From: Dicyema japonicum
Taxonomy: Eukaryota > Animalia > Dicyemida
NCBI GenBank assembly: GCA_011109175.1
Contig: RDEW01000010.1
Span: 1,020,796 to 1,084,795, forward strand
Direction of reading: 5' to 3'
Length of the DNA: 64,000 nucleotides
Notes under the pieces: generated by a model
Databases searched by the model: none
What the model saw: the letters and a program-made list of their open reading frames with translations, nothing else
What the model was told of the DNA's origin: nothing
Translations under genes and position numbers: made by a program
Shown here: piece by piece, positions 1,261-64,000 of the stretch
Layout: the number at the start of each line of letters is the position of its first letter
Numbering within the stretch: position 1 is the first letter of the stretch

Positions 1261-2420
1261 GGTTGTTGGTGATTAAATATTAAATTTTTATTGTTGGTTA
1301 AATAAAGTGGGTATTAAAATTTTGTTGAAAAAAGTCAAGTTCTCATCAATTTAAGAAAAATTTGGTACCAATCTCAATCTCTACTAAAGAACCACAATTA
1401 CACCCTGTCAACCTATAGGTGCCACTAACAATATGAGTAACACACACCAATAATCAACATCATAGTCCGACTTTCCGTAAACTCCACTTCGATTACCCTT
1501 ATAAACTCCCTCTTTTTATAATCTATAAGAAAAATAATACAGTCAGATTCCTCGTGTCTATTGAAAATGAGTCACTCTGAGGAATATCAATGCCGGTCAT
1601 GAATGTTTCCTAATAACTTTTACCCACCTTCATCATGAGACATCTGCCAACAATAAATTGTATAATCCATGACTCACCGTTATAGTTATTGCAGACACGT
1701 TGCAGAACTACGGACTTCAGATTCTTGAGTATCTTGTTTTTTTAATTGGTTTTAGGCGAATCTAACTTGAGTACCACTTAGCCATAAACATTTTTCATTT
1801 AAATTGAACACGTGTTGTAAAATACAACTAAAGGTAAGGTTTAATCTGTTCAGATGAGTTTTTCAGAGATTTTTCGATGCACAAAAGATGGATATTTTTT
1901 TGAATAAGGTCGATGAGTTCTTTTGCCGCCCGGGTTTCAATATCGGTCGCAAGTTCAATAACTTCATATTGACGGGATAGAGTCAACCTCGATTGAAAAG
2001 TTGAAATTTATTAGTAACCCCCGATACACAGAGAAAGAGTTAACAAGTAACAACTAAGTGATTGCACTCAGTTCCCACTGTCACAAAAAAAAGTCCTTCC
2101 AATGTCACAATGTCCACCCAGAACCAGCATAAAAAATAGAAGCGTCCATTCTTTGTAGTCATGAGAACTCCTCGAGTGGAGTGGGAGAGAGTAAATGATC
2201 CTTTTTTCGTGCACCCTGAAACTAGGCGGATCACATGATGTCATTCTATTAAAAGGGAAGAGGAGGACAGAATAAACAGAAAAAAATCTTCAAGTTGAAA
2301 TAAAATCTAGTTAAAATATTCTGGAATTAAAAATTTAAAATATTAATTTTTTGAATAATGACATTAGGGTGTGTTTAAATTTATGTAGTTTATTTGTAAT
2401 CTACAGTAAACGCTCTTATA

Positions 2421-4689
2421 TAGTAAACTCTCTCGAATATGCCACTCTTAAATTTGCCAATTCTGAAAATTTGCCAACATTTTTAAAAAATTTAAAATAA
2501 TTTAAAGCAGCATGGGTCGGAATGTTCTGTCGGAGGCTACACCAGACTTTCAATTGCTCAAAAAGTGGAAATATTGCGTATAAGAAACGAAAAAATCAGC
2601 TTCATGTCAGACGATATGCAACAGATTTTCTCTATTTTTTTTAAAATGAGAACTCAAGAAGAAACAGTCAATGCNTTGCTCAAAAAGCGGAAATATTGCG
2701 GTACAAAGAAACCAATAACTCAGCTTCATGTCAGACGATATGCAACAGATTTCGTTTATTTTTAAAAAGAGAATCTCAAGAAGGACAGTCAATGCAATAT
2801 TAATGAATGCAGACTCGCTTCTATTTCAGTTTAAGAACAGAAATCCTAAACTAAAAACTTGTAAAAAATTAAAATACCCGGAGCTTGATGAAAACCTAGT
2901 AGATTGGATAGATTCAATTGACTCAAAAGGTACTTACTCTAACATTTAAGGTGCTTCTCAATGAAAATCTATATTCACGATGTAAATCCAGACCACTCAG
3001 CACCGATGTTATTTTATCGAGATGGCGAATATTTGGACATATCCTCAGACTGGACCCGACTACGCCATGTAACAGAATAATGGAAGAATATTTCTACTAC
3101 GCCGGAAGTCGCGGATTTCGAGGCAGACCAAGAAACACACTTCCAACCTGCTTAAAAGATGACTACGAAGAAAATAGTCGTAAATTGGTGACAGCGGACG
3201 ATCTGGATGATGTTCGAATGAGGGCCAGGAACAAGATGGCGTGGGCGAGGATGGCGAGGAGGATGGCTGCAAAACATGGCTCAAGCAAACCCCTTTTAGG
3301 GCCACGCGAAAGAGCTCTTAACTAACTAACTAATTTAAGGTGCTTTATTGAAGGATTCTCTAATATTACATAAGGCAGAATTTATCGCTCAAGAACTTTC
3401 GCTGACTAATTTTAAAAATTCTTACGGGTTTTTGGAGAAATTTAAAAAAAGACATGGATTTCGAATGCGTTAATTACATTGCGAAATATGCACCGAATAA
3501 CATGTGGATGTTGTTGACTTTTTAAAAAAATTTGAAGAAGTTTCAAAAAGTTATTCGTCTGAAAATATTTATAATTTGAATGAGACAGGAATATTTTATA
3601 AATTGATTCCTTCTCGGAGTATTTGCAAATCACCATTTCGGCGGATATAAAAATTTTAAGGATAGAGTTTCAATCATGCTTGCGCCAATATGTCAGGGAC
3701 ACATAAGTTAAAGCCATTATTGATTGGGAAACCAAACATGCCCCGATGTTTCAAGAAATATGATTATAATTCCTTAGTTTCTTGATACAATTCTAAAAGG
3801 GCATGGATGACTTTATCAATTTTTACGAATTGGACTACGAATTTTGACAATCTATTGAAAATTGAAAAAAAGTTCAATTTTGTTATTAATGGATAATCGC
3901 CCATCCCATTGCCCATCTCTTTATTTGGAAAATATCAAAATTATGCTTATTCAAAGTACAGGACATATTCAACCTATGGATCTGGGAATCATCAAATCTT
4001 TCAAAGTTCATTTAACAATGCACAAATTACTACATTTAACGGATATTGGAATGCGAGAACTCAGTATATGAATCATATAAGAAGTTAAATCTTAGGGATA
4101 CTGTATTGTTTGTAAAAATGGCATGGGAAGATGTGAAATCCCAAACAATTTAAACTGTTTTAAACGTATAGAACGTATAGAATGCGAATCAGAACTTACT
4201 AACATAAATTTAACTGATGAAATCTTATCCAGAACAGATATTTATGATCCTATTGAATTAGAAGAATTTATTTCAATTGATCACAATGAAAAGGAGGCAA
4301 TTGATGAAGAGGAGAAATTCATTGCTATTGAGGAACAAGAAAATCCGGCAGTGTAGAAGTACATGAGGCATTAAACAAGGCTGAAGTGCTTTTAAAATTA
4401 AGAGAGATTAAAAATGACAATGATGCAGAATTCATTACTTCAATAAGAAGATTTAAAGAAAATATTAAAAATTCTAATAAGAGGGAATTGGGTATTACTT
4501 TAATATAATTTAATTAATTTTTGTTTCCTTGGTTAAAATATTGTTTTCCTTAAAAATAAAATTTATTAATTTATTTAATTATCCTTAAATAAATTACTTC
4601 AAATAAAATTTTATTCTGAAATCTGCTAATTCTCAAATTTGCCACAATTTCGCTTGAACCAAAAATAGGAAATTTGAGAGAGTTTGATG
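2421..4689 (+). mobile_element. pogo/Tigger DNA transposon (decayed)
   Basis: TIRs (C/T)AGTAAACTCTCTC(G/A)AAT with a TA flank, CENP-B-type HTH (KYPELDENLVDWI) and DDE motifs (DET, LLLMDNRPSH, QPMDLGIIKSFK). Confidence 0.85.
2957..3332 (+). mobile_element. 5'-truncated RTE-like LINE inserted into the pogo element
   Basis: RWRIFGHILRL...RGRPRNTL ORF end, (TAAC)n tail, and 13-bp TSD ATTTAAGGTGCTT at 2944-2956 and 3333-3345. The empty site is visible in the paralogue near 19943. Confidence 0.9.
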
Positions 4690-4729
4690 TATAATATATT
4701 ATGGAGAACCTAAATTTGTTAAAATACAT

Positions 4730-5780
4730 ATACCACGCGTGCTCAACATGTTTGTGGTGGTGTTGTGAAGTATTATAGTTTTCGTGATAAAGATTATTAT
4801 ATCTGCTTATAATGTTGAAGTACTGTTTGCAGAATGTTTTATAGAAATGTTTTGTCAATCATAAATGTATTATTTCAGCATTATTTATTCAAACATTCAA
4901 TTTATATTTTTTATATTGCATATTTCATTTTTGTCTCTCACTTGCATTCAGGAGTTCAGCCATCTTTCCTCTCATTACTTTCTTTTCAGGTGATTGAAGA
5001 GTTCTGTAATATGTTGGACTCATTCCCTCTGGATTCAATGATTGAGTCATCAGAATATGAAACTATCAGCTTACTATATCTTTTATGTCGTGAAATACTG
5101 TCCATATTGTCTAAAATACAATAAAAATTTTTGGGAAGTTTACGTGTTTGGACGGATTTGCTATACTCCGTCATTCGCACAAGATAAATATATTTGCGTA
5201 TATCATTAGTTGATGTTTCACAACCTGCCAGAATTTTGTCGACTTTTTTTATGATTTTAAAAATAGCAATTCCTCATTCAAATGTCAGTCGAAATATACT
5301 TAATTATTTATCCCTCACACGTGCCATTGGATTGATTATCAAATACAATTCATAATGCATTGAAAAATTTGTTTTTATTTTTCGCATTGTGTCAGGTTTA
5401 TTTCCTTCGATAATACTGAACTACGGTCTCCACCTTTTTTCTATTCTGAGGTTTGTCCATTTGTGTAATAGTTAGTCATAACATTGTATACATTATTATA
5501 ATTCACGTGCAACGAGTTAGATATCTGTGTTATCAATTTGTCGCGTGCGGTGATAGCTAACGAGCGCGAATTATTATCATACACAATTACACCGTTCAAC
5601 TGGGAATTCAAAATATTGTTTGATTGGTTCTAGTGGACTAACGTGGGTAGTTCAACGTATGTATCATAAATAATTCGGGGAAGTTTACGAATTTATTTGT
5701 TTTTGCTTTTTGTAACATTTTTGTCATTGTTATACAAATTGTACAAATCATCAGGTCACTAATCAGTTTTGTCGATATTA
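4730..5780 (-). mobile_element. Possible IS630/Tc1-like transposase remnant
   Basis: Degenerate HTH-linker text (KKGGDRSS) on the minus strand; heavily decayed. Confidence 0.3.
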
Positions 5781-6119
5781 ACCTCATGGACACTATGGCA
5801 GGTGTCACAAACTCAAATCATTGCATGGGACATTTTATTATCCATAATTTTTAGGGGGCATCTGCCAAAAATAGATTCGTAAAGATAAAGCATGTAGTGG
5901 AGGAAATCTTTTACATAGAAGAAATCCAATTCTGGAATTCCAACATTTTCATGTTTTTCTTTGACAGTCATTTTCTGCAGTCCTTTGGTGTTTAAATAAT
6001 TTTTTTTAAAGACAATTTATTTACTAATATTTTAAATTTTAATATAATAAGGAAAACATCGTTAAAGCTTTATAAAAATGCTTGAAATTCTAAATTCGAG
6101 CATTAGTTAACGCGTAGCG

Positions 6120-6670
6120 CTCGGTAATCAGTAGTGAAAAAATACAAGTAGGACTCCTGGAATATTGTTCGATAGTCCGCATACCATTAATTGCCACTTC
6201 AAAACCTTCAGGACTGCCGACATTAACCTAGTTTCAGGTGTTCAAATCAGTTTTGACGTTAGGTGACGAAAAACGAACCTGACAACAATGGGTGTCCACT
6301 TATGCAGAAGATGTGTGTAGAGAATCCCGGGTCATCCCGTCAAGTCTCTTTCCATCTCCTCGATCGAGATTCACTGGTTCAAGCTGAGATAGGAAGCCTG
6401 TAGCCTTCAGAGCTCTGCAGATCACATCGTTCAGAGCAGCATGACGTGGTCCCCTTCCGGCGCTTCTTCTGCAGGACGGCGGGTGCAATCCCTTTGCATC
6501 GACTGTTTTCCCGCATCGGCATCGGTGCTTCTGCCAAATGTCTTATCCTAGCCTTTGTCCGATTCAATCCTCAAAGAAGCGTCGTCCAAAAAGGTCCCGA
6601 GGTTTGTGCAAAATATTGCACCAAGCCATGCTCCACTCCCTCCACTTGAAGCTGACATCAAACAAGCCAG
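6120..6670 (-). mobile_element. CRE-like RLE non-LTR retrotransposon remnant
   Basis: [23 protein letters not shown]...[17 protein letters not shown] (CCHC/RH plus PD-like endonuclease motif). Confidence 0.8.
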
Positions 6671-8889
6671 ACGATGTTGATTTGGTTCTTTTTTGAGGTC
6701 TTCCAAAATTTTGTAGCAGACAATGTTATCCCAATTACTTTGTTTCGTTGTGTCTTCGGGGATTTTGAGTGCGGACCCGTGTCTTTGGGATCTTTTCTTT
6801 GTATTAATTTATTAATTTTAATTTTGACATTGATTGACAAGGATGTATCAGGTCTGCAACTCAATCTTGCATTCAGGCTCGTGACATAAATCTCATAACC
6901 TTGGCTGAGAGACAAAACTTAGTACCTATCCATTACTCTACTTTGAATTAATTAATCCATTAGTACACGATAGAGAAGCTAACTAATTATGTGGACACAG
7001 TTATTGCGGTCACTGAGAGACAAGTCATTCAAAGTCCACAAAGTGCAGGTGCACCTCCAAGAAACATAAAAAAGGGAAAGAGACGTCCAGTTTTTGCAGT
7101 AGTAGGCTTCCATCCAAGAGATCCTGTTTAAATGGTAGATTGAGCAAAGGGTTCAGTCTCCAAATAAAAGTAACTGTGTCCATTAAAAGATGACTTTGAA
7201 TCTCACTACTTAGGGAATATTCCGGACTAATATTAGACAATAATACAATTGAGCCCATCACGTTTCTAAAAATAATTCATGGTCAATTGTTGTTATAATT
7301 AAAAACATGATGGAGGAGTCACCGGGCTTTGTGGGTGAGGGCTACCATTCTAAATTCCCCGCTGCACTCGATTTTTCTGACTTATCTGTGGGAGCGTTTG
7401 CTTTTGGTAGTCACTTTTCTATTAGTCACTGATTTCTTTTACTTGAAGGGACATATAGCAAACAAATCATTCTTGAGCCTCAAGTAAATCCTCGCATATA
7501 GTTATGGATTTCTCCGAGTTGCGTATTTCAGATGCCTTTGGGGGATTAGAGAACCTTAGAGAACTTGGCATCAGAACGTCAAGCAAAGCAAGTTGTTCAT
7601 ACTTAGATTACTCTCCAGAAATATTTCTTGTATATTTAATGGTTTCATCTCATCAATGTGGATATAACCTCTAGTCCTTCTTATTGGACTCAGGAGGTAT
7701 TGGATACGCGAAATTTTTAATACAAGGAAGCATCGAATGTGCCAACATCTGAGTTCGAATCCCGTCTGACCCATATTGGGGGAACTTGGAAAAGCCTGTT
7801 TTGAGGTGGGGCAGAGGAATTATTAGTTAGGCCTTAAATTTTTAAGAATGACATCCGCTTCTCTTCATTATCTATTTCAGAATCTTCACTAACTTCATCT
7901 CCTTATTAGGAGAGGAGACACCGTCCTAACTCAGAGGATTTTGATTATCGGACCTTTACTTACTGTTCCTTGAATGTTGAATGTGGACTTGCTTGGTGGT
8001 AGACTATCTTGTGCGGTTCCTTTGTGATTGTATCGGTCTACTTATGGAAAATTCCGCCACTACTAAACCTAGTGAAACGAGTAAGTCACGTGTTTAATTG
8101 TCTGAAGTACGAAACGTGTCTTCATCCTCTAAAAATGGATTTACTTCGCATCTGCTTCTTCTTTGGTGGATAATAGTCTCAAGGAAATCGAGTGTACCAA
8201 GTTTCTAAAGTGTCGTGCACACAAAGCGTGGGTTTTGAATCCCAGCTGTCCTAAAAGTAACGTAGACGAATCTACTTTGAAGAAAAACGAGGGGATTGAT
8301 GAGATTATTAATTCTCAACTGTTCTATCCTCATATTCAGTAATATTCATTGCATTGAGATCAATGGCAAGTCCATTGTGAGCATGCATCACGCTCATCGT
8401 CCTTGAAACTCCAATTGGACCAGAACACAAATCCAACCCATTGAAAATCTCTTAATACAATTACAAGAGAAACTCTTGAAGACGGCTAGTCTACCGAGCT
8501 TCCCTCTGTTCAACACACTATCAAAATATCCATACAGAAAATTTGAGCCGATGCAATGTCCAATGAGAAGAGCAGTACAAGTCTCTCGACCCCATGGGAT
8601 TCGTCCTCTCCTTTGTCGGATTGGGGTCACTTGGTTGGTTGAGAACTTTTATTTCTTTCTTCGACCCAGTGATCCGGGGTATTAATAATCAATGGTATAA
8701 AACGAGTTGAACTAGTTATTTTCTAAGCCTCACAGTGCATGTTATATTTTTGCTCAAACAATTCCTTAAATGATCCAAATTGATATTTGATGAGAGATGG
8801 GACGTGGGATCCGGACATACCTTGATTTGACGTTAATTAGCTCAACCTCCTTCAGGTATATCCGGAGGGTTTTTAATTGAATTACCCGA

Positions 8890-9380: not shown

Positions 9381-10086
9381 ATGCTTGGTACGGGTAGAAC
9401 GGACAGTGAAGAGCGCTGCAGAATCGAGACCCTTAGTATTCATAAGCTTATGGTAACGCGGGAGTACATTTGAATAACTCAACAAGTGTACTTTAACGAA
9501 AGGAAAGAATTGGGAGCACCCGTTTTTGGCAATCACTTTCTTGTTAGCCGCTGGTTTCTTTCATTTGAAGGGACCACATTATATGCGATCGAATCTCACC
9601 TTGACGGAAGGGATTCTGAAGCGATAATCTCAGGAGATCTGCGTCAAGAATTTTGTTGTCTTCAAGGGCCCATATGTAACGGGTTGACATGAAGTCGTAT
9701 ATTCTTTAATCCACGTATTTCCATCGTTTTCTATGTGCAAACATAAAGTCCCCTCTAAAATCTTAAAGTATTTTCCGTCCTTGTGTTTCCTTCCACCACT
9801 TGTTCTTTCCACTTCCGAGTTGTGCTACGCCAAATACACCTAACGGATTTCTTGGAGCGTCCGCTTTTGGTAGTTACTTTCCTGTTAGTCACGGGCCTTC
9901 TTCGTTTAAGGGACCGGGAAAAATAAATAATAAACTTATCTGACACGTGCAGAATCGTAGTTCTAAAAGATGCGTTAAAAGAACGTATATTTCTCAATTG
10001 TCAGTTAATGACGAACAATGTCAGATATTGACAGTCAATCAATTCCATTAAAAGTTATATAAAATTATGAGTAAGCTAATTATAGA

Positions 10087-11842
10087 ATGGAAGATGGAGG
10101 CAAGTATGTGTTTGAAGACGGTGGGCACTACTGCGGAGAGTGGGTTAGCGGAAAGGCCGACGGCTACGGAGTCTGCACTGGTCCAAACAATCAAGGGGAA
10201 TATTCCGGCAAGTGGATTAACGGATACGAAACATGTGGCGTTTACGTATGGCCTAATGGCAATTTTTATGTTGGTTTATGGCTGAACGGTAAACGGCATT
10301 TCAAGGGAATGGAAAAAACAGAGTCTTGGATTTATGAGGGCGACTGGACCTTGGGTTTTAAAGGGACTTATGGAGTCCTTAAAAACAGCGAAACGGGGAT
10401 CAAATATGAAGGTTCTTGGTTCAACGGAATGTATGATGGGCATGGCGTAGAATCAAGCAACTCAGGAGGTTGGTTAATTTTATTTTAATTTAAAATAAAA
10501 ATAAATTTATAATATTTAAAATTTACATCGATGTGGGCTAATTTAAGGATTCTACGCGGGTGAGTGGGTGCGGGGAAAACGAGAAGGCTACGGCATCAAA
10601 CAGAGTATTCTTAACGCTAAAAAGACTCTACAACATAAAAATACTAATTTTCCAACAGTGACGGAAAAAATCGAAGAAAAGCCCCGAAAATTCTCAAATT
10701 CAGCCAAAAATAAAGCATTCGAGTCGATCAGATTTGTTCCAAAGTTTATAAGAAAAAGTTTTTCAAGTGACAACTTCAAAATAGCAAACTTGAAAAAATG
10801 GCAAAAGTCGGAAAACTTTAAAACAACGGACTCGTCTGACTCTGACGTGGCTGAGACATACAAGGGTCAGTGGTTAAACGACGAACGGAACGGATTTGGG
10901 GTTTCCGTGAGGTCTGACGGAGTCTACTACGAGGGAAGGTGGCTGAACAACCTCAAACACGGATTCGGGGTGACTTACTTCAACGATGGGACCCGTGAAA
11001 GGGGGGTGTACAAGAATAACGTCCACGTGGCTCCCAAATTCAAAATAACTAAGCTCTTCCAGAAAATCTTCCTTAACTACGACAAGAAGCTCTCTTGTTC
11101 TGTCGCTAACGCTCGCACGTCGGCGGAGATAGCCCAGCAAAAAGCGGAGGTCGTTTATTCCAAGTGAGTTTCCCATTCTAGCTTAGACAGGAGACGGCTA
11201 AGTACAAAGCAAAAAACATGGAGATGGTCGTTTCCAAGGCTATTTACGAGTCATCACGTGCCCAACATGTATCCCGGAAATATAACAATTGGAAGACCGA
11301 TGAAAGTCAAATTTGGGGTCTAAGCGTAGATTACGTATTTTGGGAGGTCTGTCTGAGAGACTACTTTTCCAACCAAAGGGTTAGCTCCCCGTTGGACCTC
11401 CCAAAGTCAAAGGACGGAACCTTGAACGAGTTTTTTAGGCCGATCTTCCAACGGCAATCTTCCATAAACGAAAGTCTGCCTATTGCTGAGGACAGAGACC
11501 CCATCGAGTCCCCTGAAAGGAAGGGAGTGAGGAAGTCCACGAAGATCTTAAAAATGTAGATTTTGTATGAGTGAATCTAAGAGACGAGGAAAAACTAAAT
11601 TCGGTCACTTCGAAGAGAATTAACACGAGCGTTACGGCTTCTAAACGGTAACTTGAGTTAACCCTGAAATTTAGGATGAAGTGTAAGAATTATAGAAATC
11701 AGTTGATTGCGGAAAAAGTATGGTTTATTTTTATCTGTAGAATTTACACATCATCAGAACATTCTTTGTTATTATTGTTGCATTTTCCGTACTTTCAACA
11801 TGTGTGGTAACACCCATCCACCGCAATAAAAATTTTTGTTGA
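10087..11842 (+). CDS. JPH: Junctophilin (MORN-repeat ER-plasma membrane tether)
   Basis: N-terminus [43 protein letters not shown] matches the junctophilin start. Second MORN block ([16 protein letters not shown]...[14 protein letters not shown]), helical region and C-terminal TM ([20 protein letters not shown]) are present. GT-AG introns at 10469-10547, 11164-11186, 11556-11581, 11648-11674 and 11718-11740 keep frame to TGA at 11840-11842. Confidence 0.93.
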
Positions 11843-15049: not shown

Positions 15050-15450
15050 TTTATTCGTAATATTGAATATATCCTTTCAACTTGTTATATGCTTCTCCAC
15101 CGTGTAATGGGTTCCTTCGTAATTGTGAATATATCCTTTCAACTTGTGATATATGTTTCTCCACCGTGTAATGGGTTCCTTCGTTCGTAAAATGTTTATT
15201 CGTCTTTAAGAGATTCACTCAAAGTGAATAGGTTCCTTCGTCTTGTAGGCTTTGTAATATGTAAAATCGTATCGTATTGTAAAATGGTCCTTGTTATATG
15301 TGTCGTTATATTGAAACTATTTCAACTTGAGAAAATGAAAGTAGCACCAATGTCCGTCTTGTAATGTTTATCTTCGGATCGTCTTGTAATATGGCTCTTG
15401 TAATGTGTATCTCCGGATCGTCTTGTAATATGGCTTTGTATTGTGTATCT
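15050..15450. repeat. Short tandem duplications (~60-bp and ~40-bp units)
   Basis: TTCGTAAT..GAATATATCCTTTCAACTTGT...GTGTAATGGGTTCC occurs twice, and TTGTAATG...CGGATCGTCTTGTAATATGGCT occurs two to three times. Confidence 0.7.
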
Positions 15451-15599
15451 TGGCATTGAAACTCTTTCGACTTGCGAACACGTAAGTAGCATAAATGGTC
15501 GTGGCACCAGCACGACGACTCATGAAAATCAAAAAATCTTGATGTAGAAGATTACCTCTGTTCCTTTTATACCCTCTCCGAGTTGACAGCAAACCACCT

Positions 15600-16190
15600 T
15601 TTTGAATGTCCTTAATTAGTACACTGTTCGTCTACAATGCTAAGAAACAAGAATACACACTGGGAGTAAACAATGCACACAGTCTGCGCTACCTAGGAGT
15701 AGACTATGGACACGCAGGAGATTACATGGACGACATAAAGGGGAGGATAAAGAAAGCCTTTCAGTCGCTCCTATGTACACGGAAGTTACAGGTTAGCCGC
15801 GACATCTACCTGTTAATCTTCAAGGAAGTTATTCTTCCTAGTCTACTTTATGGGTGCGAGGGGTGGTTCTTCTCTCCGAAAAGGGAGAAGATCTTATCCC
15901 TCCTAGAGAAGACTAGGAGAGCTGCAATTAAGCTCTCTTTAAACAAGAAACTGAAAGACTGTCCAAGCGAGGACGAAAACAAGTTCTTAGAACCGACTAG
16001 CAGGATTCTGGAGGATCGGATCAATGGTTTCAGGAGGAGATCAAAGATCCAGGACACGTATATAAAGCTGGGAGAAATGGCCTGAAAAAAAGGAAGGTTC
16101 AGGTGTGGATGCAAGTCTTATGGTAGGACTCAGATGTAATACCCTCCAGATACAAGTTATTGAAACAGTGGTTACTTAACTAACTAACTA
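15600..16190 (+). mobile_element. 5'-truncated LINE with intact ORF2 end
   Basis: RYLGV...RIKKA...VILPSLLYGCEGW, followed by a (TAAC)n tail. Confidence 0.8.
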
Positions 16191-17885: not shown

Positions 17886-19239
17886 CTAATCACTTATTTT
17901 TTTGTTACCGTGGTCTTTGGTATTATTATCCAATGATTGGTTGAGTGGCTGACGCCTCTCTAATAATGTCTATGTATCGTACTCTCAGTCTGTCTATTCT
18001 ACTCGGAGAATAACATCGATGAACTGCGCAGAGGTGCGAGGAAGAAAGCTACATGGAGAAAACTGGTGGAATGTATAGTGAAGAGCACAGCAATAGCGGA
18101 ACCCTGAGTATTCATATGCTTTTAGATAAAACAGGGGTGCATTTAACTAACTACCTTAACCAAGTGGTTATTTTGCCTAAAGATGTAAGCATGAAGGACG
18201 TGGATGACTAGGAGACATCGGTAGCGTGAGGTTCTATACAAAGAAAGTGTCGGATACATGTAAATTCCGTGTTTGAATCCTGTCTCTCCAAAAATTGAAG
18301 ATAGTTTGAAGGATCACTTCTAAGAAGCTCCACATGTGACATGATAGTTAATATGGCTCCATGTATGTCGTTAATAAGTTTGAGATGAGTAGCATGAAAA
18401 TTATCCACATGGGAGATCTCATCACTATTTTTCATTTTACCTCAATCTCGCTATAATCCTTAATGAGCCCAAAAAATACTTTGCAACCCCAATCCATAAC
18501 CGTTAATATAATTTGAAGTCTTACAATTTTTGTGTTAAGTTTTATTAAATCTCATTTTTATTGATTTGGGTCTTATTTCGATCGGCAATCAAAACATCTT
18601 TAATTGAAACAAATCAATAGCGCTAGTTAACTCTGAATTGAGAGCAAAGAGAATTGAATAAAAATCACCCCCAAACCCAATAACCTTAAAGTTTCATCAG
18701 AGTCCCATCCACCATCTTAGATTATTATATTAGGATTTTTATTGAGATCTCGACCTACGGGAGACTTATAGTGGATCTAACCTAGAGACTAGGTTCCCAA
18801 TTCCATATACAAATCGAGTGAATAAATTTCTCTATAAAAGCGTGAATGTTGTGGTTTATATCTTACACAGTAATAGATGAGCGGTTTATAGGATTCCATG
18901 CATTAACAAACTCATGGATAATTCGACTTTCCTGGTTAACATAGTTATCAATTACTTCTCTTCCCCTTTCTATTAGAATGGTGTCATGTGATTCACCTGT
19001 CTCAGGTGACTCCCAGTGCCACGATGGCACGAAAAATGTGCTCTCCTCTACTCTATCGAATGGATTCCCACGCTGGATGTGTTCTTTCCTTTCCGGTGGT
19101 TCTGTTTCTGCGACCATGGGGATCATACATTTAATTAGTTGTCGACTATTGACTTTTCTCGTATAATAAATTCGATTGCAGAAAATATAATGACTGTCAA
19201 AGATGTCAAAGAGTAAATCTGCTGGTCGTCCAACAAACG

Positions 19240-24410: not shown

Positions 24411-26327
24411 TGTCACATGGGCGGCGCGTAACGCATGGGCAGCCTGTTACATTTTTTCGACTTTGAAAAGGTCTTTTGATTATCCGACATTATTATTATT
24501 ATTACTCCACAGGATCACTGAGTCAAAAAGAAAGAAATAAAAGTTCTCATCTAACTAAGTGATCCCAGACCGACAAAGGTGAGGATGAGTCCCTCATTGG
24601 ATTATCCGACATTTAATTTTATATATCCGATTTATATCGTGATTTAATCCTGTTAAATTAGTTTTTTATTCATAAATGTTATGATTATAAAGATTTTATT
24701 TTTTATAGCGGTAAACCTAGATTTCTAGCGTGATTTATAGCATGGAAGATTATTTTGTTGCAATGGCTTCTTACAAGGGTTTTGTGAAAGATTGATGATT
24801 TGCATGATAAATTTCCCGAAAATCTTCCGAGGCACCGAAAATATAGGCTTGTAAAGAAAATAGAGAATTTTTCTATTATCAATGACAGGTATTGTAAATT
24901 TTCAATAATTTTAGACTGTATCTTAAATCAACTGATCCCAAGTTAGTCATATCCCTGGATAATGAAACCGAAATGGAGCATGTTGCGAAATCGTTGCACG
25001 AGTTTTCACACGGAGGAGTCAATAAAATTGAGTATGAATGTCGACAAAGATACTTCACTGTAAAGAATGAGATTATCAGAAAAGTCATTCGAAATTGTGA
25101 AGTCTGCAAATTTTCGCGTCCTTTAAAAGTTCGTGATTTTTTATAATTGTAGATTGGAGATATAAATCACCATTTGTATGCTTTTCCAAATGAACGTTTT
25201 CAGGTAGATCTAATAGACCTGAAAAAATTTTCAACATTAAATGAAAATTTCAAATGGATTTTAACGGTCATTGACATATATAGTAGGCTGGTTTTTTTTA
25301 ATTTATAGATTCGCTTTTGTACGACCACTCTATAATAAGTCTGGTAAAGAAGTATGTGAAAACGTAAGATCTTTGTTCCGCCTGAATGGGTCATGTAAAT
25401 TTCTTCAGTCGGACAATGGTTCTGAATTTAAAAATCAAAAAATAACAAAACTTTGCGAAGATTTTAACATTAAGCAAATTCACGGAAAGTCTAACAATAT
25501 ACGAGCACAAAGAATTGTCGAAAGATTTAATCAGACGATCACGAGGAAGTTGTCAAAAATGCTGGATAACAGTGAAAAAAAGTGGCTTGATAAATTAGAA
25601 AGTGCAGTCACAGTTATAACACATCGGTCCATTAATGTTCTAACGAAAGTCCTTTCGAAAGATATCGAGGAATTAAGGGAATAAATTCAATAATTAATGG
25701 TTATACTTATATCACATTATGACTTAGATAATTTAAGTGATGAGTGTGCGATTCAAGAACAAATTGACGATTTGGTTAATTGTTCGACTCCAGAATCTAT
25801 TGAAAATTCACGTAGTTTGATTTAAAAAATTTATATCTAGATAATTCCCAGTCAGATAATTCGTGTCCGAATGCGAAGAGATTCAACTTCGAAATTAAAT
25901 CGATTGAAGAAAATTCGAATTATTACAAAGCTATGAACAGGAAAATGAATGTTCATAATAGTAAATATACTTTTAACATGGGAGATAAAATGTTAATCAA
26001 AAAACATTATAAATAGGTTCGGGCTAAAAAGGACTTTGGAACAAATCCCTCATTGCGACTGGATAAGTTTGAGTCTCAGTATTATCCAGTTGCAGAAATA
26101 ATTAATATTTTATCGAATAATCGCGTGGAGGTAGTTTTAAATAGTTTAATTTGATAGATAAAAAATTCGAAATGAGAAATATCAACTGTATTAATGAGTA
26201 GACTAAAAAAGTTACTTAAATTTAATTTTTTGTGGTTAATAAATCATTTATAAAATTAATTGAAGTTAATCTTGGTTCAAGGTTAATGTAACAGGCTGCC
26301 CATAGGTAACGCTTGGCCCATGTGACA
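24411..26327 (+). mobile_element. Ginger-type (integrase-like DDE) DNA transposon
   Basis: 41-bp TIRs TGTCACATGGGC...CCTGTTACA (24411-24451) and its near reverse complement (26287-26327), TSD TAATT, HHCC zinc motif, FQVDLID, QSDNGSEF and VERFNQTI motifs, and tiny introns. Confidence 0.88.
24492..24599 (-). mobile_element. 5'-truncated short retroposon inserted in the Ginger element
   Basis: (TAA)n tail and 14-bp TSD GATTATCCGACATT (24478-24491 and 24600-24613). Homologous to 8590-8690. Confidence 0.85.
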
Positions 26328-27138: not shown

Positions 27139-27403
27139 ATTATTAATTCCTGATACACCGGAGAAAGTTAACAGTAGCAGTTTCCACTCTTACAGAAAAA
27201 GAGTCATTCAACGTCATACAAGTCCATACAAAACCAGCATAGAAGGTAAAAGACGTCCATTCCTTGCAGTTGTGGAAACCCCTCCAGTGGAGTAAATGAT
27301 TCTTTTGGATCATATGACCCCACTCTGATAGGAAAGAGAAGAGGAGGAACAGGCAAAAACAGAAATATTCAATCAATTAGCCACATAACACCACATGGCG
27401 CCA
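27139..27403 (-). mobile_element. Near-complete unit of the structured short retroposon family
   Basis: Head TGGCGCCATGTGGTG shared with 41100-41116, core CTCCACTGGAG, conserved 3' end and (TAA)n tail. Confidence 0.65.
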
Positions 27404-40814: not shown

Positions 40815-41369
40815 AATTATTCCACGGGTAAAACCAAACTAAAATAGAATTATTCCACGGGTAAATCCAAACTAACTAATTTCTGACGCGTTCCAGCATA
40901 ATCTTCACCAAGAACAGTGATTCAGAGGGTGTTGTCCGTCGATTCCAGAACTTGTTGCCAGGGAATTAAATTGTCTCCCGGTGGAAAGAATAGTTGGATC
41001 CTCTTGAATCTCGGCCAGGCATTGTGCATCACCTGTAAGGTAGATCCAATGGCGCTATCAGAGGAAAGGAGAAGAAATTTTCACCCCAATTAGCCGGATA
41101 CCACCACATGGCGCCACATCACGCGCCTTAAATACTTAATTTATGGTATTATTTTTAGTTAAAAAGTAAATATAAAATTAACAATTTCTTAAGATTAATA
41201 TATTTTTTATTTATTAATTTTTTTGAAATTTACAAATATTCAGTTCATAGAGAAACAACTTAATCCCTTTAATCTACTTTAGAATAATGAAGATTCTATT
41301 ATTTTTTTACATGAAGGGGGTTTTTCCGGTAAAAGATATTGTAGTCGTTATTTGTTTAATTACCGATAG

Positions 41370-48973: not shown

Positions 48974-51900
48974 GTCACCACCTCACCAAAAAGTCTTGAA
49001 TAAAAAATGGAAAGTTCCCATAAATAAATGGAAAATTCCTCAAAAAATTAATAAAATTTCTAATATTTTTTAATATTTTTTTATTAATTCTCTTCACTGA
49101 CATGATAACACTGCGTCTAACAAATCTACCTGCCGATCTTTTCTCCCCAATGCTTGACCACGCCTCAATCGAAAACAACGGCTCCGGTTTCATCGGTCTG
49201 TGTGGTCGTGAGACAAGTTGTTTCTTCCATTCAAGACTAGAAGCCTCAAATACACGTAAATTGGGGGAAGAAACCCACCACTCTTCAAATCTTAATAAAA
49301 GATGATCGTTGTCGATACAGGAAAGCCGTTGGTGCTCTAGAGGAACACAAGAAAAACCTCTCGATCTTCTTGAGGTGTACCGAGATTACTTAATTAGTTT
49401 GTTGACTTCTTCTTTGTGTTCCCTTCTCGGGGTTATTAAATAAATAAAATAACACTACCGGCCTGTGAAATATTAATTATTTTTTGGTTTTTTATTTAAT
49501 TTATTTATAACCACAGGAAACACCGAGAAAGAAATAGTAACCAAACTAATTAGGGTTCCCCTTATCATTCTCGCCATTTTAATTCTGTGCTCATTGAGGG
49601 ATCCTACCACTTTCGCTTGCGCCTACACATGAAGTCGATGAGGGACGGATGTCTGAGGATACTAATGTTAGATTGACATTATGTGTTTTTCAGAATTTGG
49701 CGGGACCCAGTGCCACTGGATTTGAAAAAGAACCCCTAACCCGTAACTGCATGGGGTCCCTTTCTCTCCCGACTTATATATAACCTTTGTAAATCATCTT
49801 GTAATCTAATTCATGCGATTCGCCTCCTTCAATTGGCTCCCATTGACATGGTGAAACAAAAAGGATCATTTGCTCTCTCCCACTCACTGGAGGAGTTCCA
49901 CCAACTATAAGGTTTAGATGCATTCTTCCCCTTCGACTAGTCTTGAATGGACTTGCGTGATATTAAACAGTCTCTGCGAATATGGGGATACATTTGATCA
50001 GTTGTTAACTATCAACTTATTTCCAAAGTTAACAAAAACTTTATATTTAGCATATATTTTCTTTTTCTGCGACATTAGTAGGTTCTAAGTTAATTTATAG
50101 CATTTTAAACCACATCAATATTCCCGACTGTTATAATGCCATTAGAACAAGCAGTAGCATCAGTATAGACTCAAATTACATTGGATTTGCAAGCAAGTAT
50201 ATATTATTCAGATATTTGACGCAAACTCTAATTAACCGCAAAAATATATGCTTGAATATGGAGGATCTCTTTAAGTACTTGAGTTTTGCACTTCGGCATC
50301 ATGGCCTATAAGAACGTCCATTGGATTAGTAAGAAGATTTTGACAAATTAGGTAAATTCGATTATTGTTATTAGCAAGACTATCCCCCTGATTATGACCT
50401 GGGATGCTGCCGTAAAGAAATGCTTCAAGAATTATATGGATAGACTGTCTATTGGAGAAGGACTTACATCCAATCAGTTTTGCTTAAGAGAACTCTCGAA
50501 AGTATGCTAGTCGAATATAAGAGATGAAGGTTTCTGATGAAGTCACCTCTATTACCTTTCAACTTTTGGAATTGGCATGCCGTGAGGACATCCCATTGAA
50601 CTCTAATAGAGATATTTCGACTGACTCTGATGTGGAAATTGGGATCGTTATTGGGAGATGACCAACCTTCCATTTTACCTCATCCACTCTCACCTCGGAC
50701 GAATTAATAGCCATGTTCATATCATACAGAGTCTTCAACCCAGCCAATGTGAGTACTGAAATGGCACTTTAAGTGGGATCACTCGTGGAGATCAAATGAC
50801 CAAATGTTTTTGTGTCTAAAATTGAAAAATAGAATGACTTACAATGACAAATCTACGTACATCCAACTTTTTGTTCGGGTTTCTGATGTCTCCTGCGTTA
50901 GTCCCTTATTAATGTTCGCAAAAAGGAAAACAAGAGCTTCTATCCATCATGAAGCTAAGTAAATCTCTCTACTTCCATTGAGCACAAGGACTCGACGTGA
51001 AAGTGGTCGATCTCAGGAAACAACTAGTCTTGCCGGTACGTTTCCTATTTGTCGCCAGCTTTCTACATATAAGTGAAGCTGCAGTTGACAATTTAATTCA
51101 ACAAAAATTTATTTAATAATTCCAAGATCAACCAACAAAAAAGTATCAAACGTCAAGTACTAGGGAATTAACCATCCAACAGTTTCCGTATTCTTATCGC
51201 TCGATAGATAAACGACTTTAACGTTTTCCTAAGTTGCTTCCACTAACGTTTCTGGTCATTATCGTAGTATAGTTGCTTTATTGTATTATGTCACGAGCCC
51301 TGAGCGAGATCCAGCCAAAGACGAGATTCGTCTCAACGCTTGGAGATACTTGATTCCGTAACACCTCGGGATCTCAATCGTTTATGGAAATGCCCTCCAT
51401 CACTAATAAATATTATAAAAATGACAACTTTTGACATCTCGGCAGAAGGGATGATAAAAAAAATTAAAAAACTAAATTTTTGTCAATTATATATTTATTT
51501 CAAGTAAAATGTTGGTTGAGTGATTGAAACCTCTTCAATAATGCCTATGTCTTTATTGTACTTAGTCTGTTTATTCTACCCCTTTACAGTTACAACTTTC
51601 AACGTCAGAGGACTCCTTTCGAGCATTAAACAGGAGACCTTATACATTGATTTGGACGATACAAGGTTAGCGAAGTCTGCTTACAAGAGATGAAGGTGAT
51701 TGTGGATGGGATGTTTGCTACGGAAATTATTGACTAATACTACTACCGTCCGACTTCCGAATGTAATGGGCTTTGCAGTTCATCTATCAATCGTGAATCG
51801 GCTACACAAGGTATGGAGAGTTTACAGAATCCTTATCATTCAATTGAATTACATAAAAAGAAATCGATTATGTCTGTCATTAATGAGACGTGCGAGTAGG

Positions 51901-54079
51901 AAAGTTACATGGAGAAAACTGGTAGCACGGATAGTGAAGAGCACGACGCAAGTGAACCCTAAGTATTCATATGCTTATAGGTAAGGTGGGAGTGCATTTA
52001 ACTAATTAACTAACTTAACTACAAGTGAAATAAAAGTGATATTTTTAATCAAATTGATATTTAGGATCATGTGAGACTGATTCCCGCCTAGAAGAGGTCA
52101 AAAATTCACATTCACAAAATTAGTAATAAATGAAATTTTGATGATCAACTTAGGGTCTTGGGCTAGTCTTTAGATTATAAGAGACCGTAAATTCACTCTA
52201 AAGTATGAACGACGTTTTGGGTTAAACTCAAGTTTGAGACTCGTCTTGAGTTAAATGAGGTCCAAAATAAATTCCAAAAATTGGGCGAAAATAAAATTTT
52301 CTTAAAATCAAAATTTTAAACAGAATTTTAATATGAACCACAACAATGTCTAGAGATGGATAACCCCACGAGGGAATGCGTAAGAAATGCATGACTCAAT
52401 GTACTGTTCCTATGACGTTTCTAGGATAGGATGGTCGCAAACCTTCCATAGTCAGATAATCTCTTCTCTTTTAGATGAGAAAACCATCCCTCGCCTTTAT
52501 ATATGAAATGAAAGAAAAAATAATGAAAGTCTCTCATTTAAGACAAAGCTTGCGAAGGCATAAGAGTAGATAAAAAGATCTTCCGCCTCGCATAAATATC
52601 CTCTACAATTCCTTCAAATTGAATTGATACTCTAATTCGGTGTTTCTCAACCTGGGCGATATCTTGGGAGATAGAATTTATAATTATTTTAATTATAAAT
52701 AAAAAAATATTAGTAATATTTTTAGATAAAAACGTGAAATAATTTTCAGGCATCATAAAATGAGCCACTTAAACACTGTGATGGGATAGATTTCTCCCTC
52801 TGGACTTTCAACGTCAAGGGGCTCTCCAGTTAAACCCATACTATTATATAACTCGGGTATTTGGGATTGCACAAGATAGCCACTTAGAAAGTTGACTCCT
52901 TTCACAGATACCAGCTTCGGTATACCATTGCCTCCTGGGACCACTCCAGACTTCCTTCCAACATTATTTATAGGAGAACGAGGAGCACAGTAATTTCGCG
53001 CGAGATCATGGAGGCAAGATGGTCATTGTTTGGACTTCGTCTGGACTGAGGAGCCACGCAAACGTGGCCATGAAGGATTACCTTGTTCTGGGCCCTCAGT
53101 GGTAACGTGGTCGACGCAACCGACCGTCTTTGTTGAAGACGGGAATTGGGAGACACCTCAAGGACTGAGAAGACTTCGGCAGGCTTAGGGACCTTAGCAT
53201 AGCGTAAGTTCGTATAATAATATTATAGAATGAGTTCTGTTATAAAATGCGACACCGAATTAAAAAAAGACTAAAACCAAATTAGCCAATATTGATTGAA
53301 ACGTTACCAAAAAGCTATCAGTTCCAAGGGTCACATTAGTTATATTTAAAAAAAGTGTTAAGTAGGTTTAGTGAACCTCTTTTGACTCTGGATTAAAAAT
53401 GATAAACATACTGACAGAGCGAATGACACTGCACCGAAAGTGGACACCATACTTCCAATACATCTCTTCCTTGTATAATCTGTGACAAACCAACAAGAGG
53501 AAAATCGGTATCCAGGGCTCCTGTTGCCCGAATTTTGGAGACCTTGGGTTATATTTAATGATTACCGTATTTTTAATGAAATCATTCCAAAGACCAATGG
53601 CAAAATCAAACTTATTAATCCCTCATCCAACAGTCATCCAGAGGACAAAGTCCGGGGGACTAAGGTCGAAACCAGAATTCGTCGCTAGGAAGCGAAGTAG
53701 TCTCTAGGTGAAATGAAGAGATGGATCAGGAATTGGGTGTTCCTACATAGGATGAATGTGATGACGCCACTAGAAATAAGGATGAGAAATCTTCAATCAA
53801 GTAGTCGTCACCACACGGCTTTCGTAAATTGTTTTACTATTTTAAACATTTTTGTTTACAAATTAAATGCATAAATAAGTTATTAATTTAATAAAATTCT
53901 AAAGATTTAAATTTACTTGAAATTCAAAATGAGCGACGGGAAAAAGGATTACCGCCTAATCTTTTTTGAATTGCCGTCGTCTGCAAGCAATCTGGCCGTT
54001 AGTAATTTTATGAAGACGCAAAGTAATTTAGAAAGTCGCTTTATTTAATAACCCCGAATACACCGAGAAAAAAGTAATA

Positions 54080-54900: not shown

Positions 54901-54999
54901 AAGGTTTTTAATCAACTCAATAATAACATATTTTTGTACAATTTTGGAGTATTTTGTACAATTTTGGAGTAAGTAACTCGATCAGGGTGCCATTCTTTA

Positions 55000-60100: not shown

Positions 60101-60320
60101 TAAATAAGGTTTTGGCTGATAAACTGAGCATTCCGTGTACTCTTTACAGAGGTAGTTATGGAAGAGGGTGGAATACGGTGTCTATTTCAACGGACGAGAA
60201 ACAGGTTAAAAATCCCTCACTATTTGGTAGAAAGAGTACATAGTCAATCTGATGACAGATGTAGGACAGCTTATCGACGTTGATTCGCCAGACAGTGAAA
60301 AGTACACAATGTTACATTAA
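57141..60320 (+). CDS. ARMC3: Armadillo repeat-containing protein 3 (ARM repeats plus C-terminal EDR1-like domain)
   Basis: FDKMSIEVKEAVTAVLMLNSKENEVLAKSCESLFKFASK matches the ARMC3 N-terminus. The C-terminus reads VIPIGLIKKGFYVHRAMLFK|VLADKLSIPCTLYRGSYGRGWN...YIVNLM, with TAA at 60318-60320. Many ~22-28 nt introns. Several single-base indels in homopolymers near the 5' end are probably assembly errors. Confidence 0.9.
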
Positions 60321-60671
60321 CAACGATAATATATTAACGTTACTAACATTTTATTAAAATCTACATATCTCTGAAATATAATGGCGGAATTAATACTTAA
60401 ATAAACTTTAAGTACCAGTTGGTAATTTGTCGAAAACTCCCCTTAGATTCCTTTGTTCTTTATCTTCTCGTTTTACTGGGGTAATATAATCCCCCTGTCT
60501 CAAGTAACACACAGTGCCAGTGTATCCGGGATTAGTGAATAATCAATAAAGAAGATTTAAGCGTCATCAAAAAAAATTTTCAGGCAAAAATCATAACCAA
60601 ACTACCATGAAAATAAAAAACAAATAATATGTTCTTAAAAATACAATATATTTCATGTCACGTGGCAACAA

Positions 60672-61833
60672 CTAATACTCAGGGTTCATTGGGAAAATTT
60701 TGGCAAAGATTTTCCCCTCCCATAAGGGAACTATGTCGGCGTCATCGAACACCTCAGCGAAGGCCACAGAAGAGTCAAAATCGAAACAAGTGGTCTTGAA
60801 GAAATACCTAAAGTAAGGACAACCAAAAACCGAAATCTTCCCTTCCTTCCAACGATGGACTTGAATGTCCCTAGATTGATCCTCGTTTCGTTGATCACCG
60901 TCCTGTAGGGGAACTGATCGTCCGAAAACTGGTACCCAACAACAAGAGACCCAGTTGGGGCCACAAGAGAGAAAGAGAAATTTTCCTTGCTCCGATTCAT
61001 GGACCTGGCCTACAACTAAACACGTGACACTACAGTTTGGTTCAGTCTCTGAGCAAAGCACGAGGTCGGCTGAATATTGAGTGGAATCGAAGTCTCCTTG
61101 ATAGAGTTTTCCTTCCAAATCCTAGAAATATGCTTGTCCAGGATGTCATCTGGGTAGGCCATCGAATTAAGCAAGGACCTGTCGTCAGCCTAAAAATCAG
61201 TCTTTTAGGCACGTGAGTCTTTACGCTTTCCATCCTCTGTGAAAGAGCGTCGGCAAAGTCCTGCGGATTGTCCACGGCCATAGTACGAGGATTGAAGCGT
61301 TTGGAGACCTGGAAAGTTACAACGCAAAGTACCGACTGATCGACTATACCAGTCGAGAATGAGCGGTTCATGAAAGGCTGAGAAATAGCGGGCTTCAAGC
61401 ATGAGTAAGTTGAGTCGGCCTCTCTCACAAAATCCAAATATTCGGGGGACAGTAAAAAAATCTTGAAATAATTGTCCCTCATGTAGTTAAAGGACTCATA
61501 GTAAGTTTCCATGAACAATTGGCGTAGGTTTTGGGGCTCCTCCTTCGAGACAATAGCACGTGATATCCTGTGAGACATCTCTGCCGAAAGACAGGGGATG
61601 TTTTCCCTCATAATAAGTCTTCTATGGACGGACTTTGCGTGGGAATAAAGCCTGGTGGGGTCACTGAGCTCCATTATGCCTTTGCAGGAGAATAGAAAAT
61701 CAAGTGAAGAGCCAAGCTGAATCTTATCCATGAATCTCTTGAAGACTTGGAGTCCTTCTCTGTTTTGAAGAACCTCGTCGAAACTGTTGAACCACGGAGG
61801 TACCCTCACATTTGAATAATTAGAATTATCCAT
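60672..61833 (-). CDS. AXIN: Axin (RGS, GSK3-binding, beta-catenin-binding and DIX regions), ~363 aa
   Basis: RGS domain (WFNSFDEVLQNREGLQVFKRFM...LDFLFSCKG), GSK3 helix (NPQDFADALSQRMESV), beta-catenin motif (PDDILDKHISRIW) and DIX domain (VVGYQFSDDQFPYRT...FR|YFFK...VPLWEGKIFAKI). Removing introns 61190-61212, 61010-61033 and 60808-60830 leaves 1092 nt in frame. Confidence 0.93.
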
Positions 61834-64000
61834 TCTGACTGTTAACAACCACTAAGAAAATCACATCAAAAATAAAAAAGGTTAAAATAATTTTTTTTAA
61901 TAAATTAAATCCACTAAATAAATAATTATTACAACCAGACTAGCTTGCCATACAATAACCAACTGGCGCGCTAAAAAGCTTTGATGTACCCGACAGGCTC
62001 GTAGCGTGTATTGCTAATGGCGGTACTTTGAAGTTTTACAACAAATAAATTCGATAGAAAATCAATCATATCAAAAGCAAAACAATGAAAACTGCATGCA
62101 TTCAAACACCAAAACAAATTTACAAGAACAAGCTAAGCGCTGTGGGGAATTACGTAAAACATGTAGAGAAATGGTATAATAGGGCGAAATATAAGGAATA
62201 CCATAAATGCGTAAACTTAGTGGACGAGGGATACCTTGAAAGGAAAATGATTAATAAGCGGCGATATTAATATAAATGATTCAAATTAGAATAGGCAATT
62301 AATTAAAGGACGGCGGCACATTATGAAATCTTCAAAGGCCCCGGCATTAAGTGCTTTCTTTGTACCGCCGATATAATCTCCATATAATACATTTTACCCT
62401 TGCCTTTGTTAAACTTAGTCATCTCTCATTTCATCCCCGCCTCGAATGATATGACTAAAATAGTAATAAATCATCAAAGGAATTTTAAATAGAGGCTTAT
62501 TAATAATTCCACTCGAAAATAATGAATTATGGAAATTTGGTTGCTATCACAGCAAATTGCACGTAAATTATTCTGCACGGAATCACAAACAAGTATTAAT
62601 AAATTTATAGATTTTGTGTCAATTTAATGAAAAATCTTAAATATGAGATAAATTCTAAATTCGTCGACTAAGCCGACAGAGCCTACTGAACTGTAATTGT
62701 GTTATGCTCTTTGCCTTCTTTAATTCCCTAGAGGCATCTTGGGATCCACCTAAGTTAGGAGACCCTCATGGCCGTATCCAAAAACGGTCTCTCTTTTCCA
62801 TATTCCAGTGGAGGCGTTCAGTAAGATGACGAACATAGATGGACCTGATGCTTTGAAAGGATGCGTCCGACTCCGACTGGGGGAGGTATTTCAGATATAT
62901 CAGGGGATATTAATTCCTTTGAAACGAAGCTTCAAATTAATTAGTTACAATTTATTTAATATTTTTGACAGTCTGTGATGTCAATATAATTGTCTTCAAT
63001 ATTTTGAGTCAACAAGAATTCATTATGCAACCTTCTAATTCAAGGACAGAATGCATTGATGTGGAATATTACAACGATTGACTTCTTCAAAGGCAATCCC
63101 ACCTAAAGTTGTACATTTCAATCAATTGTCAACAAATTCACGAGAAATATGACATTTGACTATTTTAACATTACATCATTAACAACTGAATGTACCCTCG
63201 GGATTAAATCGATTTGCGTTTCCCCCAATGGGAGAGTCGTTCGAATTTTGCTTGAGGCTTTTCTACGAGAATTTTATTTTCCATTTTTCGTGTTTTGAGA
63301 TCCATTCACCTCTCTTAGTGGCTAGGGACCTATACCTGTAACAATGCTCTTGGGTTCGATTTTCCTCTGTCGACTTATCGAAGGTTCACTTCCTATGCTT
63401 CGTGCCTTTCTTCGTTCATTTAGCGTCAAGGGATCCACCTGTCTCAGGAGGTGCCCAGTGGCAGGATAGGATCAGAAAGGATCATTTGCTCTCTCTAACT
63501 CTACTGGATTATTTCATGGAGAGCTTTCGACAACCGAGGTTTTTGAAGGACTAGCCACACTCAGAAGCCATGAGGTCCGTGGAAACCCAATGCTTTATCC
63601 AGGTGGGAGGCAACATCACATCAAGTCGGCAGGGATTAATTGAACTTAATGATAATTTTTACTAAATTATCATTTTGTAAAAATAATGAGATTTTTGATT
63701 AAAAATAGTCGAATTGATTCTATTGGTATGCAGAAAATCGACTTGAGAATAACAGTGCCAATCTTTACCGTAGCGTGGACTATACGAAATGGTTACATGT
63801 TCTGCTCTTTGCCTTCTTCGATTCCTTAGAGGCGTCCTAAGATTCATCTAACTTAGGAGACACTAATTGCCTGGTCGGCATCCGAAAATGGTCTTTCTTT
63901 TCCTATTCCAGTGGAGGGGTACGGTAAGGAGATGGGTGGACTTGATGTCTGAAAGGATGCCCCTCTTTCCGACCAAGGGAAGTGGATAAAACCTGTTTCA

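Follow-up and report, generated by a model that had tools for sequence, protein, structure and literature searches.

Dicyema japonicum (Dicyemida) most probably carries a superfamily of short interspersed elements (SINEs) whose 3' module derives from a long interspersed element (LINE). Decayed copies of it lie in a 64,000-nucleotide stretch of contig RDEW01000010.1 (positions 1,020,796 to 1,084,795, GenBank assembly GCA_011109175.1), hereafter the window. A reading of the letters alone, the sequence-only reading, had listed nine dispersed units and seven related 3' ends in the window as a SINE-like family with a (TAA)n tail. We put the probability that these units are decayed copies of a LINE-mobilised SINE superfamily with a LINE-derived 3' module at about 0.85. 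The element is ~325 bases long and consists of a 5' head, a ~65-base core, a variable body and the 3' module copied from the LINE. The head has tRNA-like A and B boxes in older subfamilies and is a short GC-rich hairpin in the youngest and most abundant subfamily. The family has defined boundaries, repeat tails and target-site duplications (TSDs), and its 3' end is homologous to that of an abundant, recently active LINE that encodes a reverse transcriptase (RT). It is an element of an ordinary kind, undescribed for this genome, with one unusual feature, a strongly folded conserved core.

The published D. japonicum assembly has 67.5 Mb in 377 scaffolds, 36.7% GC and 48.9% repeats (PMC6736024). 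The repeats were left unclassified there, apart from many LINE ORF2-like genes that were noted (PMC6736024). No paper describing SINEs in Dicyema or other dicyemids was found in the literature.

Results

A young subfamily defines the boundaries of the element

The genome searched comprised 67,542,437 bases in 377 contigs. Unit 63380-63640 of the window was used as a query, and at least 722 candidates were obtained for its 85-base core. Alignment of nine of these candidates exposed the complete element of ~325 bases. With a full-length copy as the query, at least 2,077 genomic candidates were found on many contigs, and the best 40 of these matched the query along all of its 327 bases at 93-96% identity. 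The consensus of this young subfamily is 324 bp long and non-coding. Thirty young copies were aligned, with a mean pairwise identity of 94.9%. All 30 start at the same base, have unrelated upstream flanks and end in (TAAA)n. The sequence-only reading had allowed that longer copies might turn out to be the 3' untranslated region (UTR) of a LINE. The longer copies do not continue into a LINE, and their common start base sets them apart from such a UTR.

Variable TSDs, a repeat tail and 5' truncation are the marks of target-primed reverse transcription, the route of non-long-terminal-repeat retrotransposition. Exact direct repeats of 12-18 bases, placed directly after the tail and recurring upstream of the element, flank 8/30 young copies, and shorter repeats, of 8-10 bases, are placed likewise in 7 further copies. 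When mismatched flank pairs were compared as a control, the 95th percentile was 9 bases and the maximum was 12. Copying by LINE target-primed reverse transcription, which had been claimed for the window units, agrees with the discrete 5' ends, the repeat tails, the variable TSDs and the LINE-homologous 3' end. These features support the family as a probable non-autonomous retroposon that is mobilised by a LINE.

Extra bases upstream of the consensus start are partly common to independent young copies (L021-L050, handles with the prefix L denoting sampled genomic loci). They end in GATTTG, ATAAGG, ATCGAG or ATATAG and diverge further upstream. They look like heritable flank from different source copies, which a variable upstream transcription start would explain. 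In three loci (L051, L052 and L076; for example L052:459-1200) a young SINE lies tail-to-tail with the 3' end of a LINE on the opposite strand, and the junction is kept at 88-93% identity. This would mean either that the composite is being copied as a whole or that LINEs insert preferentially at the (TAAA)n tail. In L010 the SINE is interrupted by an antisense LINE insertion.

The window contains old copies of the same family

Comparison of the nine listed units with one another by blastn gave partial similarity only. A profile was therefore built from the 30 young genomic copies, iterated once on sampled genomic loci and run against the window with nhmmer. The iterated profile matched 9/9 units (E 3e-51 to 6e-7), so the homology proposed for them stands, and several are shorter than had first been described. 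With 61-73% identity to the young consensus, the window copies are judged to be old, decayed members of the SINE superfamily. SINE copies make up ~3% of the window.

The common 3' terminus that had been described was confirmed, with (TAA)n or (TAAA)n after it. Six of the seven related 3' ends are real and one (9850-9935) matches nothing. Three of the six (8590-8690, 24492-24599 and 49390-49448) belong to 5'-truncated 3' ends of LINEs rather than of SINEs. One insertion had been credited with a 14-bp TSD and 5' truncation. This description fits the copy at 2007-2293, where the truncation was confirmed by a start at model position 37. Its TSD is exact over 7 bases only and reaches ~13 bases if mismatches are admitted.

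The 3' module is shared with an RT-encoding LINE

The D. japonicum genome is rich in LINEs, with 6,563 RT candidates. Tail-only matches of the SINE profile pointed to two further LINEs. Positions 237-323 of the SINE model, the last ~87 bases, correspond to the 3' terminus of a LINE ending in (TAAA)n (nhmmer E 2e-8). After removal of the simple tail, SINE and LINE termini aligned with a Smith-Waterman score of 52 compared with 19 +/- 2.3 for shuffles (z ~14). The 3' unit of this LINE has at least 442 genomic candidates. The adjoining RT region has at least 343, at 86-97% identity. At nine loci or more the two lie collinear, ~200 bp apart. An RVT_1 domain is present in the L085 copy, and copies are 5'-truncated at differing points. 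The second LINE has a (TAA)n tail with RT immediately upstream, and the 3' module recurs in it in a more distant version.

The helper had been sought among local RTE-like LINEs with (TAA)n or (TAAC)n tails. The (TAA)n part of this proposal holds in that a (TAA)n LINE is a sister of the partner; the main partner itself has a (TAAA)n tail, and the 3' end of the (TAAC)n LINE at 15618-16190 is unrelated. RTE-clade LINEs have a very short 3' UTR. The reading frame of the (TAAA)n LINE stops ~55 bases before the tail and leaves, as in RTE, a short 3' UTR with A/T-rich tandem repeats. The label RTE-like would thus fit on the length of the 3' UTR. Seven LINE families, taken from the 30 best RT loci and ending in (TTGTC)n, (TTTGA)n, (TTCA)n or (TAAC)n, were tried as partners and rejected, as none had similarity to the SINE tail above shuffles.

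Gly-Ile-Thr-stop closes the LINE reading frame. These last codons are overlapped by the first arm of a stem whose second arm immediately precedes a G-run and the tail. In the young SINE the two arms read GGATACAC/GTGTATCC; in an older tRNA-headed SINE they are GGATATAC/GTATATCC, changed on both sides, and in the (TAA)n LINE GGATCAC/GTGATCC. The stem was found by a search of each sequence separately, since MAFFT placed the arms of different families out of register. Its sequences suggest that the 3' stem is preserved by compensating changes between families. The 3' module would accordingly comprise the last three LINE codons, a short 3' UTR hairpin, the G-run and a (TAAA)n or (TAA)n tail. Stringent LINEs have a known recognition signal of a stem plus a repeat tail, and the dicyemid 3' module fits it.

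Several observations were made on other LINEs. The element at 15618-16190(+) is the 3' part of a LINE whose protein is 86-88% identical to that of the L077/L079 family and whose end is (TAAC)n. Just upstream of it lie tandem repeats of 64 bp (15054-15184) and 39 bp (15357-15451). LINE families sampled in loci L053-L080 differ by tail, namely (TTGTC)n, (TTTGA)n, (TTCA)n, (TAAC)n, (TAA)n and (TAAA)n, and in two LINE families some copies have an extra extension of ~230 bp past the tail repeat. The most abundant young LINE family encodes APE and RT in an open frame of up to 907 amino acids, and its 5' end starts with two nested hairpins just upstream of the endonuclease. These hairpins are found at L076:930-1010(-) and L069:880-960(+), and the inner stem has compensating changes (GATCC/GGATC compared with GCTCT/AGGGC).

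Heads of older subfamilies resemble tRNA

The head of the young subfamily starts as a GC-rich hairpin. It lacks a B box, and A-box-like motifs are found in it only if two mismatches are allowed. In older relatives, A- and B-box-like motifs separated by 42-44 nt immediately precede the linker and core (a second copy in L016, copies in L019 and L029, and the window copy at 63311). The head of the window copy, 63311-63363, has its A-box-like motif at 63311 and its B-box-like motif 42 nt later. A spacing of 42-44 nt is that of the boxes in tRNA genes. The statement of the sequence-only reading that there is no clear tRNA B box is correct for the young subfamily and does not hold for the older relatives, including this window head. 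A box-pair scan of 676 kb on both strands gave only 24 pairs, many of which belong to a genuine tRNA gene or to SINE heads, of this family or of another. The motifs and their spacing make it likely, short of proof, that the older subfamilies are tRNA-derived. The string GTGGTTAATTGG of the young head aligns with the B-box region of the older heads, and the young head looks like a shortened remnant of the older tRNA-like head.

A different SINE-like family, with a body of its own, retains a tRNA-like head in good condition, its A and B boxes 43 nt apart. It occurs at L020:93-500(+) and L066:2975-3400(+), and on the reverse strand in L026 and L066.

The core can be drawn as a pseudoknot

The core of ~65 bases is conserved across subfamilies with differing heads and tails. 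Two mutually crossing helices were noticed in it, and in 20 diverged cores the order P1-P2-P3-P1'-P4-P2' can be drawn. The fraction of paired cells in these cores is 82% for P1, 85% for P2, 85% for P3 and 65% for P4, compared with 33-48% in slid controls. The young copy folds with z = -4.06. Covariation in the 20-core alignment did not exceed shuffles by any measure, with a single pair changing on both sides, in three sequences, and RNAalifold gave no consensus structure for the 20 diverged cores. The first P1 pair (alignment columns 9-42) is G-C in 13 sequences and G-U in 2.

The ~88 bases upstream of P1 are retained in 30/30 young copies. Because all 30 retain them, the RNAs that were copied had not been cut at the 5' edge of the core. 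Searches with Rfam at E up to 10 for HDV-family (hepatitis delta virus) and hammerhead ribozymes, covering a young copy, 62600-64000 and three older copies, gave chance-level matches only, and no tRNA, 5S, 7SL or small nuclear RNA family was among them. Two exact-pattern scans for the core in metagenome contigs, which include few animal contigs, gave no match. A home-made descriptor of the HDV fold was also run on the sampled loci and was dropped as non-discriminating, with 2,703 real matches compared with 2,282 shuffled ones.

Features of the window

The window is eukaryotic, with a GC content of 33-41%. The copies of the SINE and of its two related LINEs, together with two pieces of host genes, are collected in Table 1. 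ARAGORN found no tRNA in the 64-kb window, and no Rfam family reached its gathering threshold anywhere in it. A weak match to a C/D-box snoRNA (SNORD70, 22 bits, E 2.2) at 63119-63192(-) is at chance level.

Table 1. SINE copies, LINE 3' ends and host gene pieces in the window
Feature	Position	Strand	Evidence
SINE copy, 5'-truncated at model position 37, with tail and short TSD	2007..2293	-	nhmmer E 2.7e-51; 70% identity to young consensus
Diverged SINE copy, 3' half (model 170-317)	6947..7116	-	nhmmer E 5.9e-7, iterated profile only; no match with young-copy profile
Sister (TAA)n LINE, 5'-truncated 3' end	8413..8693	+	blastn 82-84% to RT-bearing L025, L042
MORN repeats, host gene piece	10568-11167	+	Domain match
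SINE copy (model 55-295), conserved core 18972-19077	18945..19160	+	nhmmer E 2.7e-35; row of core alignment
Sister (TAA)n LINE, 5'-truncated 3' end	24489..24592	-	blastn 93-95% to L025, L042
Old SINE copy, nearly full-length (model 6-316), core partly deleted	27139..27403	-	nhmmer E 2.3e-47
SINE head and core (model 5-167)	40983..41117	-	nhmmer E 1.9e-18
Partner (TAAA)n LINE, 5'-truncated 3' end, 335 bp	49114..49448	+	blastn 85-86% to L083, L085
Isolated 3' terminus of related element, (TAAA)n-like tail	49499..49559	-	nhmmer E 2.9e-4
SINE copy (model 92-293)	49811..50023	+	nhmmer E 1.5e-30
Short head/core fragment, absent from the sequence-only reading	53727..53819	-	nhmmer E 1.1e-4
Isolated 3' terminus with tail	54040..54078	-	nhmmer E 3.5e-6
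Internally deleted SINE, head/core fused directly to 3' stem arm and tail	60418..60550	+	nhmmer E 2.2e-7 (model 25-130); tail read directly
RGS domain, host gene piece	61042-61848	-	Domain match
Core of a copy of a rarer, older subfamily (listed unit 62670-62915)	62704..62819	+	nhmmer E 1.9e-13; 19 genomic candidates
Old SINE with tRNA-like head, core at 63399-63549	63311..63640	+	nhmmer E 1.9e-25; at least 722 genomic candidates for core
Second copy of the rarer subfamily, reaching the window end	63787..64000	+	nhmmer E 2.6e-21 (63787-63987); 76-78% identical to 62700-62864

Discussion

The results suggest a mechanism of the usual SINE type. SINE RNA would be transcribed from an internal promoter, by RNA polymerase III in the case of the tRNA-headed forms. 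The LINE RT would recognise the hairpin and repeat tail on this RNA and copy it into nicked A/T-rich targets by target-primed reverse transcription. If transcription started at variable points upstream of the element, the extra 5' bases would become heritable.

Some results weigh against a SINE superfamily mobilised by this LINE. The young copy has no match in Rfam at E up to 10, including tRNA, 5S, 7SL and small nuclear RNA, and ARAGORN makes no call on the young consensus head even at relaxed settings. The young subfamily therefore appears, as judged from these searches, to be without a recognisable promoter or small-RNA origin. The Rfam tRNA model, run at E up to 10 or 5, gave no score to the older tRNA-like heads, and very relaxed ARAGORN settings called one of them only (L019). 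At the 3' end, SINE and LINE tails are only ~80% identical over ~50 aligned bases, and a LINE closer to the SINE than the (TAAA)n partner may exist. Finally, every clear TSD is 2-23 extra bases away from the consensus start, which is not what a simple model would predict.

One rival explanation agrees with the SINE superfamily on the 3' half of the element and departs from it solely over where the 5' half came from and what it does. The element would be a deletion derivative made from both ends of the helper LINE, as NARTc is of L1Tc and the R2-derived SIDEs are of R2, and not a classical Pol III SINE. Head and core would be a 5' RNA module of that LINE, an HDV-type pseudoknot with a promoter, translational or structural function. 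The core does fit P1-P2-P3-P1'-P4-P2' with 65-85% of cells paired compared with 33-48% when slid, the young copy is strongly folded, and the young head has no small-RNA signature. However, no LINE 5' end bearing the core was found among the sampled genomic loci, and the one readable LINE 5' end (L076, L069) is the nested hairpin pair, with no evident similarity to the core. Moreover, covariation in the core does not rise above shuffles, and the older subfamilies join the same core to tRNA-like heads, which is the classical SINE layout. We regard such a derivation as a serious contender that is on balance somewhat improbable. Processing of the element RNA by the core as an active, self-cleaving HDV-like ribozyme is very unlikely. 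Several LINE clades are known to have HDV-type ribozymes at their 5' ends, and the helix order is compatible with the type. Yet the ~88 bases upstream of the would-be cut are kept in every one of the 30 young copies, the first P1 pair is G-U in only 2 sequences and G-C in 13, no Rfam HDV-family match was obtained at E up to 10, and RNAalifold found no consensus structure.

Two further explanations are scarcely credible. The first takes the units as mere fragments of LINE 3' UTRs, or as chance A/T-rich similarity, and three of the listed 3' ends are indeed LINE 3' ends. This account is refuted for the family by the common discrete 5' end and unique flanks of 30/30 young copies, by the restriction of the LINE match to the last ~87 bases and by profile matches in the window with E down to 1e-51. 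The element might instead be a hammerhead retroposon, or retrozyme, giving circular RNAs like schistosome Sm-alpha. Circular RNAs had been suggested by the sequence-only reading, and dicyemids have been positioned close to flatworms (PMC6736024). However, no hammerhead or other ribozyme was detected in the window at gathering threshold, nor at E up to 10 in the young copy and 62600-64000. The three-way junction, when read directly, is without the hammerhead core boxes, and the elements are single and dispersed with TSDs, not tandem dimers. Nothing in this analysis supports either circular RNAs or a ribozyme.

The SINE superfamily with its LINE partner may be compared with known systems. In layout, as distinct from domain sequence, it resembles the CORE-, V-, Deu-, Ceph-, Nin-DC and MetaSINEs, which have a head, a conserved central domain and an exchangeable LINE-derived tail. 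As in those superfamilies, several subfamilies with a common core and differing head and tail occur in one genome; unlike them, the young dicyemid subfamily has lost a recognisable tRNA head. Stringent pairs such as eel UnaSINE1/UnaL2, and the RTE-derived Bov-tA, likewise have homologous 3' ends with a stem followed by a tandem-repeat tail. The stem is kept by compensating changes there too, and the dicyemid LINE 3' UTR is very short, as in RTE. The dicyemid pair differs from these in that the first stem arm reaches into the end of the LINE open reading frame, over its last codons. Trypanosome NARTc/L1Tc and the R2-derived SIDEs are also short non-autonomous elements that combine a fold of HDV order with a LINE 3' end. 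Their ribozyme, kept from the 5' end of the LINE, sits at the very 5' end and defines it, whereas the dicyemid fold lies ~88 bases inside and was uncut in the copied RNAs. Schistosome Sm-alpha/Sj-alpha are abundant structured retroposons of ~330 bp in parasitic spiralians, as the dicyemid element is, but they carry a hammerhead ribozyme, and none was detectable in the dicyemid element with Rfam.

The folded core invites a tentative proposal, to which we give slightly less than even odds. The core may be a functional RNA pseudoknot of HDV topology that never cut, or no longer cuts, that came from the 5' ends of helper LINEs and that is kept in the SINEs as a structural signal. If so, the signal might serve transcription, assembly of the ribonucleoprotein or recruitment of the RT, and the family would stand as a hybrid between SINEs with tRNA heads and deletion derivatives of LINEs. 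More remotely, the core might be related to a domain from SINEs of the cephalopod host, and transfer between host and parasite would then follow.

The SINE superfamily and its helper LINE account for part of the repeat load of D. japonicum, whose genome is very small and about half repeats. The element boundaries and the profile allow the family to be masked in the assembly. Since the SINE and LINE stems differ by compensating changes, the pair is suited to tests of how a LINE RT recognises its template. Insertions of the SINE could also serve as characters for relationships among dicyemids.

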